Virus record (IMG/VR): IMGVR_UViG_3300045974_000132
Coordinates: 124,001-188,000 of that record
Reading direction: 5' to 3' (one strand)
DNA length: 64,000 nt
Translations under genes and position numbers: made by a program
The notes under the pieces: generated by a model
What the model was told of the DNA's origin: nothing
The model's input: the letters and a program-made list of their open reading frames with translations, nothing else
Database searches by the model: none
Part shown: positions 6,217 through 34,530 of the stretch, piece by piece
Layout of the letters: each line of letters starts with the position of its first letter
Numbering within the stretch: the stretch's first letter is position 1

Positions 6217-7638
6217 CTAAAATGCCTTTATATCAAGAGTTTTCAGATCCCGTACTACCCGAACTGGGAGTATCTTCAACTCTTGTTGCAGCTTTTTGAT
6301 GCTAAGTTCGGCCTCCTTAATTGCCGATTTAAGTTTAGATGCCTCAAGTGACTTTAGTTGCCTTACTTTCAGATCGAGGATTTCATTTGCTTCTTCTGGA
6401 GTTATCTTCAACTTCGTTACCAGATAAGCAGTAGAGTCTTCTACCTTCAAAGATGCAATAATCACAGCAAGATTGAGGACCGCAAGCAGAGTTACGTTCA
6501 ACCTACGTAACTTCTTTTCCTCCAATGAGATTAGATAATGAACTACCTTACGTTCCATTTCGATGCGCCAGCTGCACCATTCATGAATCAAGGTAGCTAC
6601 GTCAGAACGTCGGAACGATACGCCTTTAAGTTGTCGATCCGTAACTCCTATATCATAGGATTGTGTTCGTGTTATTTCCTTCTCAACTACTGGAAGTACA
6701 TCTTCCAGCTTTAGGTTTCTCATATAGGTTATTTCAAATCTAAAGCCCTTCTTGTCTGAAACATCTGACACCGATTGGATCATCGGTTTAGCCAAAAGGT
6801 TCTTACTGAGAGTTGCCCAACTAGCCTTTGAAATCAACCCGGGTGCTGCGGATGTTAATGCGATGATGCGCTTTGCTTCATCTACTTCCAGAATCGGTCG
6901 AAATGATATACTGCCCTTGCCGGTTTTAAAGAATGCAAGTTTTGTTTTCCGATCCGATATACACTCGCCGCCGTATGCAAAGTTAAAGTCCAAGTTATCT
7001 AAGCACAGCTTTGGTGTAATCTTGATGCCTTCTAAACACATTACAACTAGGTCCAGAACACCCTTGATACCGAACGATGGGCATTCTGCGCTCATACCGA
7101 AAGCGATTGACACGCTGCCGTTCAACAACAAAACGGGAAGCTTGACAGGTAGCACTAACGGCATTCGATCATCACCGCTGAAGTTAGGCACATAGTCTGT
7201 CACCGCCAGATACGTCGGATCGAGCATGTACTTCGTTGCAAACGTTGACAACCTTGCTTCAGTATAACGGTAAGCAGCAGGAGGGTCGATGTTATCTCCC
7301 CAATTGCCGAAACCTTCTACTAAGGGAATAGGCGTGTTGCGTGTTGCCCAATCCCCTTTCTCATTCTTCGTACCTGCGATACCAACCATCGCGTCATACG
7401 TTGAAGAGTCACCGTGTGGGTGGAACTTACCTAATACCTCACCTACAGTACGAGCAGCTTTCTTGAAAGGCCCTGAGTCTTTCAACCCTAGTCCATACAA
7501 CGCCCATAGAACACAGCGATGGACAGGCTTAAGGCCGTCACGAAAATCAGGAACTGCTCGTTGCATAACAACCTCTTGTCCATAAGACAAAAGATTACGT
7601 GCTGTTATGGAAGATAAAGATTCAGTTTGGTGTGTCAC
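6217..7638 (-). CDS. gyrA: type IIA topoisomerase subunit A (GyrA/ParC-like, lacking C-terminal beta-pinwheel)
   Basis: RAVPDFRDGLKPVHR, GKFHPHGDSS, catalytic AAYRYTEARL; only 473 aa. Confidence 0.93.
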   Translation of the reverse strand: MTHQTESLSSITARNLLSYGQEVVMQRAVPDFRDGLKPVHRCVLWALYGLGLKDSGPFKKAARTVGEVLGKFHPHGDSSTYDAMVGIAGTKNEKGDWATRNTPIPLVEGFGNWGDNIDPPAAYRYTEARLSTFATKYMLDPTYLAVTDYVPNFSGDDRMPLVLPVKLPVLLLNGSVSIAFGMSAECPSFGIKGVLDLVVMCLEGIKITPKLCLDNLDFNFAYGGECISDRKTKLAFFKTGKGSISFRPILEVDEAKRIIALTSAAPGLISKASWATLSKNLLAKPMIQSVSDVSDKKGFRFEITYMRNLKLEDVLPVVEKEITRTQSYDIGVTDRQLKGVSFRRSDVATLIHEWCSWRIEMERKVVHYLISLEEKKLRRLNVTLLAVLNLAVIIASLKVEDSTAYLVTKLKITPEEANEILDLKVRQLKSLEASKLKSAIKEAELSIKKLQQELKILPVRVVRDLKTLDIKAF

Positions 7639-8797: not shown

Positions 8798-9523
8798 TTA
8801 TAGGCCAAGTAGCTCCTTACGAGCAATAGTTTCACTACCTACAAGCCGTTCAAAGTATTGTAGTTCTTTTCCTTTTGGCGGTGTTACTTTGATGACTGTC
8901 CGTGTAGCAGGATTGAATGCTACGTGTTCCAACATCTGAGGACTGATTTCACCCCAGCCCTTAGCTCGACCAATTATGTTTGAATTGGCTCCCTTGGGTA
9001 GCTGCTTCTTTACTTCCAAGAAGGTATCCCCGAAGTAGCGTTTGTTCTTGAAGAAGGCTGAATACAGAGGCGCGTCGACAACGTAGATCATGCCCTGTTC
9101 AAACAGTCTGGGCATCAGACGCCAATACAGAGTTAGCAGCAATACGCAAATGTGACGACCGTCTTCGTCAGCATCAGGAAGCAAGAATATCTTACCTACT
9201 CGAAGCTTGCTGTACGCATCTCCTTTGGCTTCCTTACCCACATCAGCTTTGTGAATATCAAAGTTGTAGCCGGTTGCCATTAAGATGTTCTGGACCTTAT
9301 CTGATTCCAGAATCTTGTGGAGCTTCTGCTTTGCAACGTTCATAATCTTACCGTCGAGCTTCATCAACTCTTGGTATTTACTGTCACGCGCATTCTTCCC
9401 AGTGTTGTGGACATACACCCCGTTTCCTAAAGCAAAGTTATGGTACTCAGGTACAGTAGCATCATATACCGGTACAGACTTTTCTAACTTTATTCGACGA
9501 ATAGACTTAACAAAAACACCCAT
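8798..9523 (-). CDS. gyrB: GyrB/ParE C-terminal half fused to split-intein C fragment (IntC, 40 aa, 9404-9523)
   Basis: Intein blocks F/G VYDATVPEYHNF...VHN followed by +1 Thr, then TOPRIM GKIMN, PDADEDGRHI and KGWGE; own SD GAAGGTG. Confidence 0.93.
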   Translation of the reverse strand: MGVFVKSIRRIKLEKSVPVYDATVPEYHNFALGNGVYVHNTGKNARDSKYQELMKLDGKIMNVAKQKLHKILESDKVQNILMATGYNFDIHKADVGKEAKGDAYSKLRVGKIFLLPDADEDGRHICVLLLTLYWRLMPRLFEQGMIYVVDAPLYSAFFKNKRYFGDTFLEVKKQLPKGANSNIIGRAKGWGEISPQMLEHVAFNPATRTVIKVTPPKGKELQYFERLVGSETIARKELLGL

Positions 9524-9575
9524 TAAATCACCTTCTACTAAATACTAATTTAATTGTGTTATAAAGGAGAACATA

Positions 9576-10631
9576 ATGAAATTAGCGGATTTTAAACAAA
9601 ACCTAACTTTAATCAACCGAGAGCAAGTAGCTAATTTTCGTGAGCTATTTCCTTCTAAGTTTACAGAATTACTAAACAAACAAAATGAAGGAAGGGCCAG
9701 GAAAGAGGGTAGATTAAAAGCTCAGATTTTACATGATTTCTTATTCAAAAAACCAAAATGTTCTTGTGGAAAACAAACAAACTGGATGCCTGAAGGCAAA
9801 TATGCAAAGTTTTGTTCGCGTGAATGTGCAGATGGTTCACAAGAAACCGTAGATAAAAGAAGGGCTACTTCTAAGGAAAGATTTGGTGGTGAACCAAATC
9901 TGCATCCTACTATACAAAAGAAAAAGAAGAAGGTATTCCTTGAGAAATACGGTGTAGACAATCCTTCAAAATCAGAAAAGATCAAACGCAAAAAGCGTAA
10001 AACGTCCTTAAGTAATTTTGGAGTAACGCATTGGACTAAAACAGAAGAAGGTCGGCAGTTTATGTCTGAAGAAAATCCGATGTATCTTGCAGCTTCGCTT
10101 GAAACCTTAAAGAAGACGAATCTAAGTAAATACGGTTGCGAGTTTGCTTCTCAGCATAGATCCGTAAAAGCTAAAATGAGAAGGACTAGCTTAAAGCGAT
10201 ACGGTGTTCCTAACGCAGGCGTACTACCGAAATTTCATAGAAAAATATGCTCCGATAGATTTGGTACAACGCATACAGTTCAGGGCTATGAACCCAGAGC
10301 CATTGAATGGCTGTCTAATAGGAAAACCGTTGTAAGCATAAGTTCTTCCAGAAATAGCATACCGGTAATATACTATAAAAGCAATCGTAGCTACTATACT
10401 GACCTAGTCGTTAGTATGAAGTCTGGGTTAAAAAGAATAATAGAAGTAAAGGGCTCCTATCCTCTTAGGTGCTGCTTTGAAACAAACGTTCAGAAATTTA
10501 AAGCTGCTTCAAAGTATGCTAAATCTATAGAGCAGGAGTTTTGGCTGTTCTACTATACAGACAGAGGGCGACTTATAAAGGTTCGGTCGCCCTCAAGAAA
10601 AGACTTAACAAGGCTGCTATCGAGTCTGTAA
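9576..10631 (+). CDS. free-standing putative homing endonuclease (KYG repeats + C-terminal PD-(D/E)xK domain)
   Basis: CxC...CSxxC zinc motif, repeated KYGVxNP-type motifs, C-terminal QGYE...YYTD...IIEVKG; AT-rich; only plus-strand gene; AAGGAG SD and upstream CTAATTTA. Confidence 0.8.
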   Translation: MKLADFKQNLTLINREQVANFRELFPSKFTELLNKQNEGRARKEGRLKAQILHDFLFKKPKCSCGKQTNWMPEGKYAKFCSRECADGSQETVDKRRATSKERFGGEPNLHPTIQKKKKKVFLEKYGVDNPSKSEKIKRKKRKTSLSNFGVTHWTKTEEGRQFMSEENPMYLAASLETLKKTNLSKYGCEFASQHRSVKAKMRRTSLKRYGVPNAGVLPKFHRKICSDRFGTTHTVQGYEPRAIEWLSNRKTVVSISSSRNSIPVIYYKSNRSYYTDLVVSMKSGLKRIIEVKGSYPLRCCFETNVQKFKAASKYAKSIEQEFWLFYYTDRGRLIKVRSPSRKDLTRLLSSL

Positions 10632-12245
10632 CTCTATGCCTTCTTTAAGGTCCTGTGCTTCTGTATAAATACCATCTATCTGCAACCAAGGATGGTCTAT
10701 AGTACATATCCAAGTAGTCCCGTCAGACAGTTCTACTTCAATCAATTCGTCAACCCATTTAGTGAGTCGAGGTTCATCAAAAATGACCTCGACTTCTTTT
10801 TTGGTCTTTAAATTGAAAGCGAAGCCTTTAAACTGTTCTCCAGCTTCCGTACGCTTTGCCATTTCTTCAAAAAGTATAGTAGAGCCGTCAGAAAGAAGAA
10901 CTGGTGTATTTCCAATGAAACAGCCCGCAGCAGAGTCACCTTCAACTAGATACAGCTCACGGGCAGCCACAGGGCATTTCGGAGCAGCAACTAGAGAAGA
11001 AGGAAGCGAAGATTTAGCACGTCCCTTAGCATCAGCAATTGCTGACAACGTTTTCTTGAAAGCTTCCTTTGATACCTTAACAGCCATCGCACGTTTGACA
11101 ATAGCCCGTGCAAGAGGTTTGTTCTTGTCGAAGAATAGTTTCAACTGAGGAAGTAGCAAAGCTTCAACCTGCTTTGACACATTGGAAGTCAGTCGATCCT
11201 TTGTCTGACCGCTGTACTCAGCATGGTGCATCTTCCAGTCAAGAATACCTACAAGTCCCGAGTACGCATCTTTCGGAGCAAACTTCTGGGTCTTCTTCTT
11301 GAAAGGAGCAAGTGCAGCATTCAAAGAATTGCGGAAGCCAAGTTCATGCTCACCGTCATCCCGAGTACGTCCAGAACAGACATAGGTTTCAAGCGCATCA
11401 TCGTCAGAGTAGGTCGACCATTGCAGAGCAACAGACATATCATCATGGATGAAAGAGAACATACGACCTGTTGCAGTTACATCCCGTTCGGCCAACCGTT
11501 GCTTGATAATAGATTCAAGACCGCCCTTATTCAAGAAGGTCTTAGACTTTCCATTAGCACTAAACGTTACTTCCAACCCCGGATTGAGATTAGCAAACGA
11601 CTTCATCCAAGCAGCCGTATAACCAAGATCGAGAGTTGCTTTCGTCTTACCCTTGTCAGTCGATACGATTGTTTGATCTGTTGACCAAAGAACGATTGTC
11701 CCCGATACAGGCTTGTAAGGCATGATCTTAGTAACGCGCACAGGAGGCTTCTCTTTGAGCAACTCTGTTACAGGTTTGCCCTTAGAGAACTTCTGATAGT
11801 GCCAAGCTTTGTCCCGAAACGTCCATACTTCAAAAGAAGAGGATACAGCATTAACACCTGCTGCTCCTACTCCGTGAACACCGCGCGACTTCTTGTAAGC
11901 ACTGTCATTGAACTTACCACCTGTGTGCAGTTCAGTAAAGATCAATGTCAGGGTTGATGCTTTCTTGCTTCTAGGATTCTCGGGATCAACGACCTTTAGG
12001 CCAACAGGGATACCTTGAGCTTTGTCTGCTACAAGATAAACGTTGGCCTTATTGTCAGCATAGACGAAGATGGACTTATTACGACCAGCCATAAATTCGT
12101 CAGCAGAGTTGTCGAAGATTTCCTTGACGCATTGAAATACCATTGAACGACCGCGCTCACCTAGGTACATCCCAGGGTTTTCACGCACATTATCTGGAAA
12201 CTTTAATCTAACAATATTTGCTTCACTGTATGAAGACCTTGCCAT
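10617..12245 (-). CDS. gyrB: GyrB/ParE N-terminal half (GHKL ATPase, transducer) fused to split-intein N fragment (IntN, 101 aa, 10617-10922)
   Basis: VRENPGMYLG, EIFDNSADE, GIP, LHTGGKF, GVHGVG; TOPRIM VEGDSAAG followed by intein block A CFIGNTPV and block B TIDHPW, then a stop. Confidence 0.93.
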   Translation of the reverse strand: MARSSYSEANIVRLKFPDNVRENPGMYLGERGRSMVFQCVKEIFDNSADEFMAGRNKSIFVYADNKANVYLVADKAQGIPVGLKVVDPENPRSKKASTLTLIFTELHTGGKFNDSAYKKSRGVHGVGAAGVNAVSSSFEVWTFRDKAWHYQKFSKGKPVTELLKEKPPVRVTKIMPYKPVSGTIVLWSTDQTIVSTDKGKTKATLDLGYTAAWMKSFANLNPGLEVTFSANGKSKTFLNKGGLESIIKQRLAERDVTATGRMFSFIHDDMSVALQWSTYSDDDALETYVCSGRTRDDGEHELGFRNSLNAALAPFKKKTQKFAPKDAYSGLVGILDWKMHHAEYSGQTKDRLTSNVSKQVEALLLPQLKLFFDKNKPLARAIVKRAMAVKVSKEAFKKTLSAIADAKGRAKSSLPSSLVAAPKCPVAARELYLVEGDSAAGCFIGNTPVLLSDGSTILFEEMAKRTEAGEQFKGFAFNLKTKKEVEVIFDEPRLTKWVDELIEVELSDGTTWICTIDHPWLQIDGIYTEAQDLKEGIELQTR

Positions 12246-13092
12246 GTTTTTTCTCGAAGTGTTTTATTTTCAAAAGGAGTTCTTCTAAAGACAGATGACT
12301 TGTACTATTTTTCTTCATATTAGTTGTACAAGGCATTAGTTTTAGATTCGCGGGATGGCATATAATGTGCAAGGGTACTATGGGTGACCGCTTCACATAT
12401 CTATTCTTTGCTTGTGAATAAATATTCCAACCGTCAAACAAACTTAACTGATGGTCAACATGGTGATCATAAGACCTTAAACTTTTAGTGTCAATAAGGT
12501 CGCCCCACACGACTAAGACGCTCTCAGTAACTTTTCGTACCGCATATTTGTAAGAAGACTGTGTAGTAAAAGTCTTCCTAAAAGCATTGCGTAAACTTTC
12601 TTGATTTCTTTTTACACAATTAGCAGTGCCTAATTCCAAGGAACGCTGAAATGCTAAGTTGACACGCTCTGAGGTAGACCTTAAAGCAATGCCCTCTTCT
12701 TGCAATACATTCTTAACATGTAGAGGGTCCCGTAAAGCCACGCATTCTGTAATTTCCTGAATACTAGCACTATCCTTAACGTACATTCTTATTATTTTTT
12801 GCCTATTTTTCTGTACAATTTGTTTATGATGCTTTATGAGGTCGGCTTTACCTTTAGATACGCCTTCTTCATTAACAATAGCTTGTACAGTAGACATAGA
12901 CAAACCTACTTCCTCTGATATATCTCGGAAGGTCTGATTTTTGTATAAACGTACTACTTTCTTTTTTAAGCGATCTGGGATTATTAAAGCCCACTTACCG
13001 TTTTTGGATTTAGTGTAACTATATCCATTTTTCCATTTAACCGTATCCCCTACGTTTCCGGGATAGGTTCTAGGTATAACATTTTGTAGCAT
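12223..13092 (-). CDS. putative homing endonuclease (HTH + HNH-like)
   Basis: HTH (TFRDISEEVGLSMSTVQAIV) and C-terminal HVDHQ...HPANLKLM...NMKK; AT-rich; overlaps the gyrB start. Confidence 0.7.
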   Translation of the reverse strand: MLQNVIPRTYPGNVGDTVKWKNGYSYTKSKNGKWALIIPDRLKKKVVRLYKNQTFRDISEEVGLSMSTVQAIVNEEGVSKGKADLIKHHKQIVQKNRQKIIRMYVKDSASIQEITECVALRDPLHVKNVLQEEGIALRSTSERVNLAFQRSLELGTANCVKRNQESLRNAFRKTFTTQSSYKYAVRKVTESVLVVWGDLIDTKSLRSYDHHVDHQLSLFDGWNIYSQAKNRYVKRSPIVPLHIICHPANLKLMPCTTNMKKNSTSHLSLEELLLKIKHFEKKHGKVFIQ

Positions 13093-33205: not shown

Positions 33206-33590
33206 GCCGCTCACCTATTTTGGTAATAAGGACTCCGTCATTATCAGGAGAGTGAGCGGCTTAACAAACCAAAGTCTGTTAGTGACCCCATCCGTTTAGG
33301 TGCTGTTAGGCAGCCTTCCGGAAAGACGCATCATTCGCGGCAATTACAAGTTTAGCCCGGTTTAACGAGAGTACAATGCTCGGATCGTTCTTTATCAACT
33401 ACTCATGCCCAATCGAAACCAGGTCAGGCCCATCAGGATCGTTCTATGTATCACCCACCCCGGTGACCTCAGCCTTGCGGTAGGACCTTTCGGCACACAG
33501 AACGATTTTGGTGGACCTGGGGAGAATCGAACTCCCGTCTTGAACACTTTTATTTCAAAAGTCTCATAAGCAAAGTTGTTCCGGTAGCTA
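33206..33590 (-). ncRNA. ssrA: circularly permuted (two-piece) tmRNA
   Basis: T-arm and CAGGTCC-ACCA (33509-33540) lie upstream of the 5' strand GGGCCTG (33431); G3-U70 pair; tag ORF (A)ANDASFRKAA* at 33306-33341; outer boundaries approximate. Confidence 0.9.
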
Positions 33591-33646
33591 ATCGGCTTTA
33601 CTTACATACGATCATATTCCTTAACACGCCAATGATTACGTGTTAG

Positions 33647-34455: not shown

Positions 34456-34530
34456 TGGTTGAGGATGACGGGATCGAACCGACGACCCTCTGCTTGCAAG
34501 CAGAGGCTCTCCCAACTGAGCTAATCCCCA
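34456..34530 (-). tRNA. atypical tRNA-Ala(UGC), possibly pseudo
   Basis: U1-A72, G3-U70, ACCA; palindromic anticodon arm with a 6-nt loop TTGCAA. Confidence 0.75.

Follow-up and report, generated by a model that had tools for sequence, protein, structure and literature searches.

An antisense, putative homing endonuclease gene in the gap of a split intein in a jumbo-phage topoisomerase II gene

Fractured genes are the closest described counterparts of the locus analysed here, in which a plus-strand endonuclease gene separates the N- and C-terminal parts of a split intein, itself housed in a phage gene for the large (gyrB-like) subunit of topoisomerase II. The locus is part of a 64,000-nucleotide stretch of DNA (hereafter, the window) that corresponds to bases 124,001-188,000 of IMG/VR virus record IMGVR_UViG_3300045974_000132, 286,393 bp long and flanked by direct terminal repeats. 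The source virus is a jumbo phage that likely came from a pond metagenome, and identical pieces are also present in a second pond study. The original fractured genes comprise 26 loci with all three reading frames on one strand (Dassa et al. 2009). They affect eight host enzymes, no topoisomerase among them, and encode GIY-YIG or Vsr-like endonucleases; the 3′ end of the endonuclease gene overlaps the C-terminal intein half (IntC), and one locus, gp41-7, has no endonuclease.

The resemblance to the window locus is considerable. In both, an enzyme gene is broken in place, its pieces are fused to the N-terminal intein half (IntN) and to IntC, the intein is divided at the canonical split site, and the gap is filled by a free-standing endonuclease gene that appears to have a control element of its own and whose 3′ end overlaps an intein half. 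Each set also contains one locus without endonuclease (gp41-7 there, L051 here), and all examples are phage-borne and metagenomic. The differences concern strand, contact and protein family. In all 13 loci considered here the endonuclease gene is antisense, which departs from the one-strand arrangement, and its 3′ end meets that of IntN tail to tail instead of overlapping IntC. By Pfam the window endonuclease is exclusively DUF7487/TnsA-like, not GIY-YIG or Vsr-like, and the interrupted gene encodes the large subunit of topoisomerase II.

Two other described systems bear on the comparison. A MobA (HNH) cassette splits the T4-type topoisomerase gene 39/60 (10.1101/2022.08.31.505936; PMC2988022), so that there, too, a homing endonuclease breaks a Topo2L gene in two in its Toprim region. 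Unlike the window locus, the MobA insertion involves no intein; its pieces are separate subunits with added tails, and ribosomal bypass takes place. The first of these sources also mentions one metagenomic Topo2L open reading frame (ORF) that is interrupted by a Vsr endonuclease with Hint domains on either side, and describes no antisense endonuclease (10.1101/2022.08.31.505936). The EDxHD/Vsr-like homing endonucleases exemplified by I-Bth0305I, which occur in phage introns and fractured genes, combine an N-terminal DNA-binding region with a C-terminal restriction-fold nuclease (PMC3239194), an order apparently shared by the window protein. Their histidine-based site of the Vsr type (Asp, His, Asp) differs from the ExK lysine site of the window protein, in which no Vsr or DUF559 Pfam match was found. 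In the literature, with coverage thin for subscription journals, we found no paper naming DUF7487 and no TnsA-like or antisense endonuclease in a split intein.

We consider it likely that the window gene encodes a free-standing homing endonuclease, which sits antisense in the split-intein gap of the topoisomerase gene and homes into empty alleles. The gyrB halves would then be translated separately; IntN and IntC would pair and join their exteins by trans-splicing, and with the topoisomerase thus made whole the insertion would come at low cost. The endonuclease would be made from its own phage promoter-like element and, in a mixed infection, would cut the uninterrupted site of related phages, which codes for EGDSAGG followed by Thr or Ser, at or near the insertion point. 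Repair off the occupied allele would copy the IntN tail, the endonuclease gene and IntC as one unit, and the carrier would be protected, its target site being interrupted by the intein. A comparable division of labour is reportedly found in the collaborative homing of F-CphI and the cyanophage psbA group I intron, in which the endonuclease, encoded beside the gene, probably cuts the element-less allele. There, as here, the endonuclease is said to lie outside the splicing element, whose presence breaks up the target while the host gene remains functional; in the window the splicing element is a split intein, and the endonuclease gene is inside its gap and on the other strand.

The split intein and the gene in its gap

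The two parts of the topoisomerase gene, gyrB-N (10617-12245, minus strand) and gyrB-C (8798-9523, minus strand), match positions 20-452 and 449-635 of PHROG 543, in the original order and at the original locus. The N-extein (10923-12245, minus) comprises the GHKL ATPase, the transducer and the start of Toprim, ends in EGDSAAG, and matches Pfam DNA_gyraseB (8e-19) and PHROG 543 (1e-76). The C-extein (8798-9403, minus, stop included) begins with Thr+1 in TGKNARD, contains the remaining Toprim and the GyrB C-terminal domain, and matches Pfam Toprim and DNA_gyraseB_C as well as PHROG 543 (2e-42). The insertion point thus falls in the Toprim motif, between EGDSAGG and the following Thr. Fused in frame to the two parts are IntN (10620-10922, minus; 101 residues), with a weak match to Pfam Intein_splicing, and IntC (9404-9523, minus; 40 residues), which matches positions 120-155 of the same profile. 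The intein blocks are complete, with Cys1 in C-F-I-G-N-T, T-I-D-H as block B, a terminal V-H-N and Thr+1 as nucleophile. The same block pattern recurs in all 12 related loci described below, with Ser at residue 1 in L009.

Structural comparison and modelling agree with this assignment. IntN matches solved PolII intein structures at E 5e-4. The predicted IntN/IntC complex reached an interaction prediction score from aligned errors (ipSAE) of 0.86, against 0.01 for the best control, with 204-208 confident contacts, at least 96% of which are shared by three runs, and with a predicted local distance difference test (pLDDT) value of 83 for the partner. In a benchmark, the ipSAE mark was passed by 51 of 78 solved complexes and by 2 of 108 mismatched pairs; the pass of IntN/IntC may partly be memory of solved split inteins. 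We thus predict that IntN and IntC associate into one HINT fold. The initial annotation had placed the endonuclease gene at the usual endonuclease position of an intein, and the division into 101 and 40 residues is indeed that of the canonical split site. Taken together, the evidence supports reading the flanking ORFs as the halves of a canonical split intein within a gyrB-like phage gene, and trans-splicing is predicted.

The endonuclease gene itself (9576-10631, plus) encodes 351 residues plus the stop and is antisense to all of its neighbours. The start at 9541 given in the initial annotation is a mere margin that takes in a promoter-like motif, the ORF beginning at 9576. At the other end, its reading frame and that of IntN overlap 3′ to 3′ by exactly the 15 nt that the same annotation had specified (10617-10631, the stop-proximal end of the gyrB-N ORF).

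A second intein site lies about 70 residues downstream, at D-x-D-G, in the topoisomerase genes of relatives. In L050 (5001-9715) and L087 (4992-7997) this site holds contiguous inteins with an in-frame HNH domain, and in L052, L053 and L063 it holds mini-inteins.

Domains and fold of the endonuclease

The window protein matches Pfam DUF7487 (1.5e-26), a profile that covers repeats and nuclease core alike, Tn7_TnsA-like_N (PF08722; 2.5e-6; 28.4 bits for the whole protein and 30.4 bits for the domain alone, cut-off 26.5) and PHROG 3339, 'homing endonuclease'. A word search returned 216 homologues; conservation was assessed in an alignment of 15 homologues that are 26-52% identical to the window protein. 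In the AlphaFold model (mean pLDDT 85.8) a string of helices with YG(V)xNP-type turns is followed by a compact alpha/beta domain. This nuclease domain (residues 236-351; 10281-10628, plus) has a restriction-endonuclease-like alpha/beta core, with pLDDT 88-97 over residues 220-345. Its nearest structural match is TnsA (1f1z_A; Z 9.9, root-mean-square deviation 2.5 Å over 107 residues, 18% identity, VIA re-alignment), followed by Hjc, the tRNA-splicing endonuclease EndA and RecU (Z 6.5-8.3), all nucleases of the restriction-endonuclease fold. With the whole model, Foldseek matches were weak (best E 1.5e-3), and the top ones were all PD-(D/E)xK nucleases. Residues Q236, G237, E239, D276, E290, K292 and K307 of the domain are invariant in the 15 homologues. 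The active site reads E239 (10290-10292), D276 (10401-10403) and E290-V-K292 (10443-10445 and 10449-10451, all plus).

The C-terminal nuclease motif and the repeated (K/R)(Y/F)GV motifs, both noticed in the initial annotation, were borne out, the former by these invariant residues and the latter by six (K/R/N)(Y/F)G motifs at residues 102-230, spaced 20-38 residues apart. Structure prediction, which the initial annotation had proposed as a check, found a nuclease fold of the PD-(D/E)xK type with TnsA nearest and with a complete set of catalytic residues. The E...D...ExK active site is shared with TnsA of Tn7 (PDB 1f1z, 1t0f), the best structural match. Unlike TnsA, the window protein lacks the TnsA C-terminal domain, carries a zinc knuckle and a repeat array at its N-terminus, has neither TnsB/TnsC partners nor transposon ends nearby, and belongs to an intein rather than a transposon. 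The identification of the C-terminal domain as a TnsA-like PD-(D/E)xK nuclease is therefore supported, with cleavage activity predicted.

An alternative is that the endonuclease is dead or decaying and is kept since its deletion would harm the overlapping end of IntN or the expression of gyrB-C. Decay is what the homing cycle predicts once an element is fixed; in addition, L051 has no endonuclease gene, and in the window copy the residue ahead of D276 is Thr, not the more usual Pro, a point against a working homing endonuclease even though this residue is not catalytic. Yet the catalytic and zinc-binding residues are invariant in homologues as divergent as those aligned, none of the 12 related loci has a frameshifted or truncated copy, and the overlap is limited to the variable tails of both proteins. 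We therefore regard a decaying endonuclease as very unlikely.

The region ahead of the nuclease domain consists mainly of six basic (K/R/N)(Y/F)G repeats (residues 89-235; 9840-10280, plus), each comprising a 15-residue helix and a YG(V)xNP-type turn. It contains 35 lysines and arginines versus 14 aspartates and glutamates (isoelectric point 10.3). Repeat number differs among homologues, six in the window protein and more in some relatives, and the repeats pair with other nuclease domains (DUF559, MTES_1575, T5orf172 and others), L050 being an example. Given their charge, modularity and position, the KYG repeats may well bind DNA. Searched alone, the repeat region met no counterpart among solved structures (best E 1.9 with Foldseek, best Z 2.9 with VIA), and a match to STPR-DNA (Z 2.4) was too weak for use. 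The repeats seem to resemble NUMOD3 (PF07460), although a profile search of residues 1-220 gave no match up to E 10. In L050, a 521-residue KYG-repeat protein with a different nuclease domain is encoded on the sense strand directly 3′ of the topoisomerase gene.

Nearer the N-terminus is a four-cysteine knuckle (C62, C64, C80 and C84; 9759-9827, plus), invariant in the 15 homologues and modelled as small beta hairpins. Its pattern over residues 62-84 is C-x-C-G-K ... W ... F-C-S-x-x-C. A YacG-like zinc finger, of the gyrase inhibitor family, scored below the cut-off (E 0.11), and one homologue, P0064, has a precomputed YacG Pfam hit; the knuckle is probably a generic FCS-type finger. The same phage genome encodes another protein with the catalytic module of the window protein. 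Just beyond the window (L002 1426-2613, minus; genome 118,481-119,668), a 395-residue protein matches the C-terminal part of DUF7487 (2.7e-16) and shares the nuclease core of the window protein, here reading V-Q-G-F-E-P ... P-D ... E-V-K, with five zinc-ribbon repeats replacing the KYG repeats. Thus, in one genome, one catalytic module is combined with two distinct arrays of presumed DNA-binding units.

Occupied and empty alleles and the movement of the element

In all nine of the closest endonuclease homologues whose contigs were looked up (29-51% identical), the gene lies antisense between gyrB-N and gyrB-C. Three more occupied loci from IMG/VR (L009, L013 and L043) bring the related metagenomic loci with this layout to 12. 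The endonuclease and IntN tails overlap by 12-53 nt in all 12 related loci with DNA, touching only the variable tails of the two proteins, and frameshifted or truncated endonuclease copies are absent from these loci. The shared orientation and tail overlap suggest one origin of the layout. A tenth homologue (31% identical) is free-standing among GIY-YIG and HNH genes.

Allele counts rest on 80 phage loci that an N-extein profile scan returned out of 357 confirmed relatives. Most of these are uninterrupted at the site. In the 63 intact alleles that were aligned there, the EGDSAGG-coding site is nearly invariant at codon positions 1 and 2. The nearest relative of the window gene, L017 (59% identical), is an intact single ORF of 641 residues with Thr already at +1, and L064, also intact and 87% identical to the occupied L008, has Ala, not Ser, at +1. 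Two loci represent further states of the site. In L051 (6333-6931) a split intein occupies the same position with both halves on one strand, a 180-nt non-coding spacer between them and no endonuclease; this may be the state either after loss of the endonuclease or before its invasion. L009 combines two inteins at this site, the split one with its antisense endonuclease gene and, immediately after it, a homologous mini-intein that is contiguous. The topoisomerase gene of L009 (4004-8495, contig shared with L042) contains three inteins altogether: Cys1 of this mini-intein is the +1 residue of the split intein, which itself begins with Ser1, and a third mini-intein is present at the downstream D-x-D-G Toprim site.

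The distribution of occupied alleles and the comparison of trees speak for movement between phage lineages. With 10 of the 80 extein genes occupied, no fewer than 7-8 changes of state (gains or losses) have to be placed on their tree, hardly below the mean of 9.6 for shuffled labels, and 27 of 500 shuffles were as low. In the endonuclease tree, the window protein groups with those of L003, L004 and L005 at 100/98, and the intein tree concurs with weaker support. The exteins, however, put L005 in the other major clade, and a group of window, L003 and L005 is rejected by them (delta log-likelihood 123; approximately unbiased (AU) test, p-AU 0.0003). The extein-like group of window, L003 and L013 is in turn rejected when the endonuclease sequences are tested (p-AU 0.0002). 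The intein halves are also better conserved than the exteins (mean identity 46.5% vs 37.1%). The tree conflict, patchiness, intein conservation and shared layout together indicate joint transfer of the IntN tail, the endonuclease gene and IntC from one phage lineage to another, with occasional replacement of the endonuclease, as in L013. The initial annotation had proposed that the endonuclease probably targets intein-less gyrB alleles; empty alleles, patchy occupancy and tree conflict lend this indirect support.

A number of observations weigh against homing into empty alleles, besides the Thr ahead of D276. The 80-gene extein tree was built by a quick method. The groups submitted to the AU tests were named post hoc, after the trees had been inspected. 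Mantel correlations of endonuclease, intein and extein distances failed to reach significance, since identity is saturated at 30-40% in most pairs. The intein of L013 is 64% identical to that of the window while its endonuclease is distant (35%), so that intein and endonuclease have not always travelled together. The occupied loci were mostly found via the endonuclease itself, which introduces an ascertainment bias. The empty allele nearest to an occupied one (L064 versus L008) has only about 75% DNA identity; the sample thus includes no recent homing event. In four metagenomes mapped to the region there were no element-free variants or joints.

The same distribution bears on another reading of an intact nuclease, namely that it has been domesticated as a weapon or host shut-off function and now serves the phage by cutting rival phage DNA or the EGDSAGG site of host gyrB/parE, the intein shielding the phage's own gene. 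In its favour, EGDSAGG is a universal Toprim motif, nearly invariant at codon positions 1 and 2 in the intact phage alleles; moreover, the maintenance of the layout across very divergent phages could mean retention for benefit. Patchy distribution and tree conflict are nevertheless what a selfish mobile element predicts, and most relatives manage without the element. We thus give the service function little credence.

With regard to origin, the initial annotation had the endonuclease itself invade a mini-intein and split it. The alternative concerns origin only: the intein may already have been split, or may have lost an earlier in-frame endonuclease domain, before a DUF7487 gene landed in the spacer. 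L051, with its split intein, 180-nt spacer and no endonuclease, fits this course of events, and L013 looks like a case of a split intein that stayed in place while its endonuclease was exchanged; contiguous HNH-bearing inteins at the second site of the same gene likewise agree with it. On the other side, L009 has a contiguous, homologous mini-intein at the very same site, as the initial annotation's model needs, the common orientation and tail overlap of all endonuclease-bearing loci fit a single founding insertion, and L051 is equally explained by later loss. Entry into an already split intein is in our view somewhat unlikely, though it is a more serious contender than either decay or service to the phage. 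Since L009 and L051 both exist, the order in which splitting and invasion took place may have been either one.

Among deposited phages we found no near-identical DNA, no record with an extein end plus IntN, and no genome with the whole arrangement; in isolates such as PaBG and Motura the match is confined to the extein part. Short contigs from freshwater (X7) and wastewater (X3), with a depth of just 2-3, cover the endonuclease 3′ end and IntN (window 10555-10852) with 0-6 differences, and neighbouring pieces from the same runs are about 88-89% identical to the window. This segment may have been recently exchanged.

Transcription and genome setting

The endonuclease gene may have its own promoter. 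The promoter-like motif CTAATTTA occurs on its strand at 9545-9552, as initially annotated, 23 nt before the ATG, and a ribosome-binding site, AAGGAG (9564-9569, plus), can be read 6 nt before it. In the window the motif has 8 copies versus 2.6 expected, a number reached in none of 100 shuffles, and the other seven copies are all on the minus strand. Genome-wide there are 27 copies, of which 21 are intergenic, 26 are oriented with the local genes and about 19 are located 6-71 nt 5′ of an ORF start. Upstream of the endonuclease gene, the motif recurs 35-49 nt before the start, exactly or with one mismatch, in L003, L004, L008 and L009; in the two closest relatives it stands at 35 nt, exact in L004 and with one mismatch in L003. 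Because of this copy number, intergenic placement, orientation and proximity to ORF starts, CTAATTTA seems to act like a phage promoter element, and it is these motif statistics that point to a promoter for the endonuclease gene. A sigma-70-type promoter scan found 8 promoters versus 9.4 expected, and a terminator search 3′ of the endonuclease gene gave nothing above chance. A 15-bp hairpin in the 5′ untranslated region (9545-9585), in which the motif pairs with codons 2-4 and the ribosome-binding site is in the loop, is reminiscent of hairpins that regulate T4-type endonuclease genes; it is marginal (z -1.7) and absent in nine relatives, and we do not claim it as a conserved regulator.

CTAATTTA has no minus-strand copy between 13119 and 6139, which makes it probable that gyrB-C is expressed from a transcript spanning the endonuclease gene in antisense. 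If the gyrB-C transcript does cross it, the geometry implies that the endonuclease and gyrB transcripts would be complementary over about 1 kb, and the endonuclease transcript may interfere in antisense with the gyrB operon. Among RNA runs, none was found to contain this DNA. One could go further and regard the reverse orientation as part of the element's design and the KYG array as an unrecognised modular DNA-reading repeat. Convergent transcription would then couple the nuclease to topoisomerase expression, in either direction, by RNA polymerase collision or through the sense/antisense RNA duplex of about 1 kb. Each unit of the array would contribute a basic helix; with 5-9 units to a protein and four or more different nuclease domains as partners, the array would set target specificity by the number and sequence of its KYG repeats. 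We regard this joint reading as doubtful.

A block of about 155 kb with minus-strand transcription surrounds the window, and the claim that the endonuclease gene is the only plus-strand gene of the window holds, as competing plus-strand ORFs fail coding tests. The tests covered ORFs of at least 120 residues and two of 102 residues, so very small genes could escape. Each of the other long plus ORFs shadows a better-scoring minus ORF and has no family match, the two 102-residue ORFs run into either a minus ORF or a tRNA gene, and all eight tRNA and transfer-messenger RNA (tmRNA) genes of the window are on the minus strand, leaving a single convincing plus-strand gene. Its codon score of 0.049 falls short of the genome mean (0.238 ± 0.092) by about two standard deviations, and such atypical codon usage is in line with a mobile gene. 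Downstream of gyrB-C, on the same strand as both gyrB halves, is the gene for the A-type subunit of topoisomerase II (6217-7638, minus; Pfam DNA_topoisoIV, 9e-71), an order repeated in related loci.

Just upstream of gyrB-N, and overlapping its start by 23 nt, is a 289-residue ORF (12223-13092, minus) with helix-turn-helix matches in its N-terminal part and the pattern H-x-x-D-H...N...H-P-x-N-L in its C-terminal part; in PHROGs it matches 'HNH endonuclease' at 1e-5. Its codon score is low, at 0.087, and L003 has no HNH gene at the corresponding position. This ORF is probably a second free-standing homing endonuclease gene at the gyrB locus. The sole other solid plus gene in the 155-kb minus block (L093 508-1449, plus; genome 83,507-84,448) also encodes an endonuclease, with three treble-clef zinc-finger repeats and matches to PHROG 559/681 at 3e-45; its C-terminus has a Vsr-like motif by eye only, with no Vsr profile match. 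The reversed genes of the source phage thus seem to be homing endonuclease genes. Elsewhere in the window (29593-50123, minus) there are seven tRNA genes and a tmRNA-like gene (33215-33601, marked with an asterisk by ARAGORN); for the tRNA-like gene at 34456-34530 a four-base anticodon (tgca) was called.

Overall, the locus extends the fractured-gene model, a proposed route by which homing endonucleases give rise to split inteins, to a conserved lineage in which the endonuclease is encoded on the opposite strand. An in-frame intein endonuclease could not have such an orientation, and none of the 26 original fractured loci was reported with it. All of the predicted stages, namely the empty site, the contiguous mini-intein, the split intein with endonuclease and the split intein without it, have been sampled at one site of one gene, which makes the model testable on a single system. 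DUF7487, an uncharacterised Pfam family, gains a probable function and a probable target, the EGDSAGG-coding site of Toprim. In addition, the related loci supply about a dozen new natural split inteins of canonical size, with IntN of about 100-113 residues and IntC of about 38-45 residues. Residue 1 is Cys or Ser in these inteins and position +1 is Thr, Ser or Cys, and they may serve as orthogonal protein-ligation tools.

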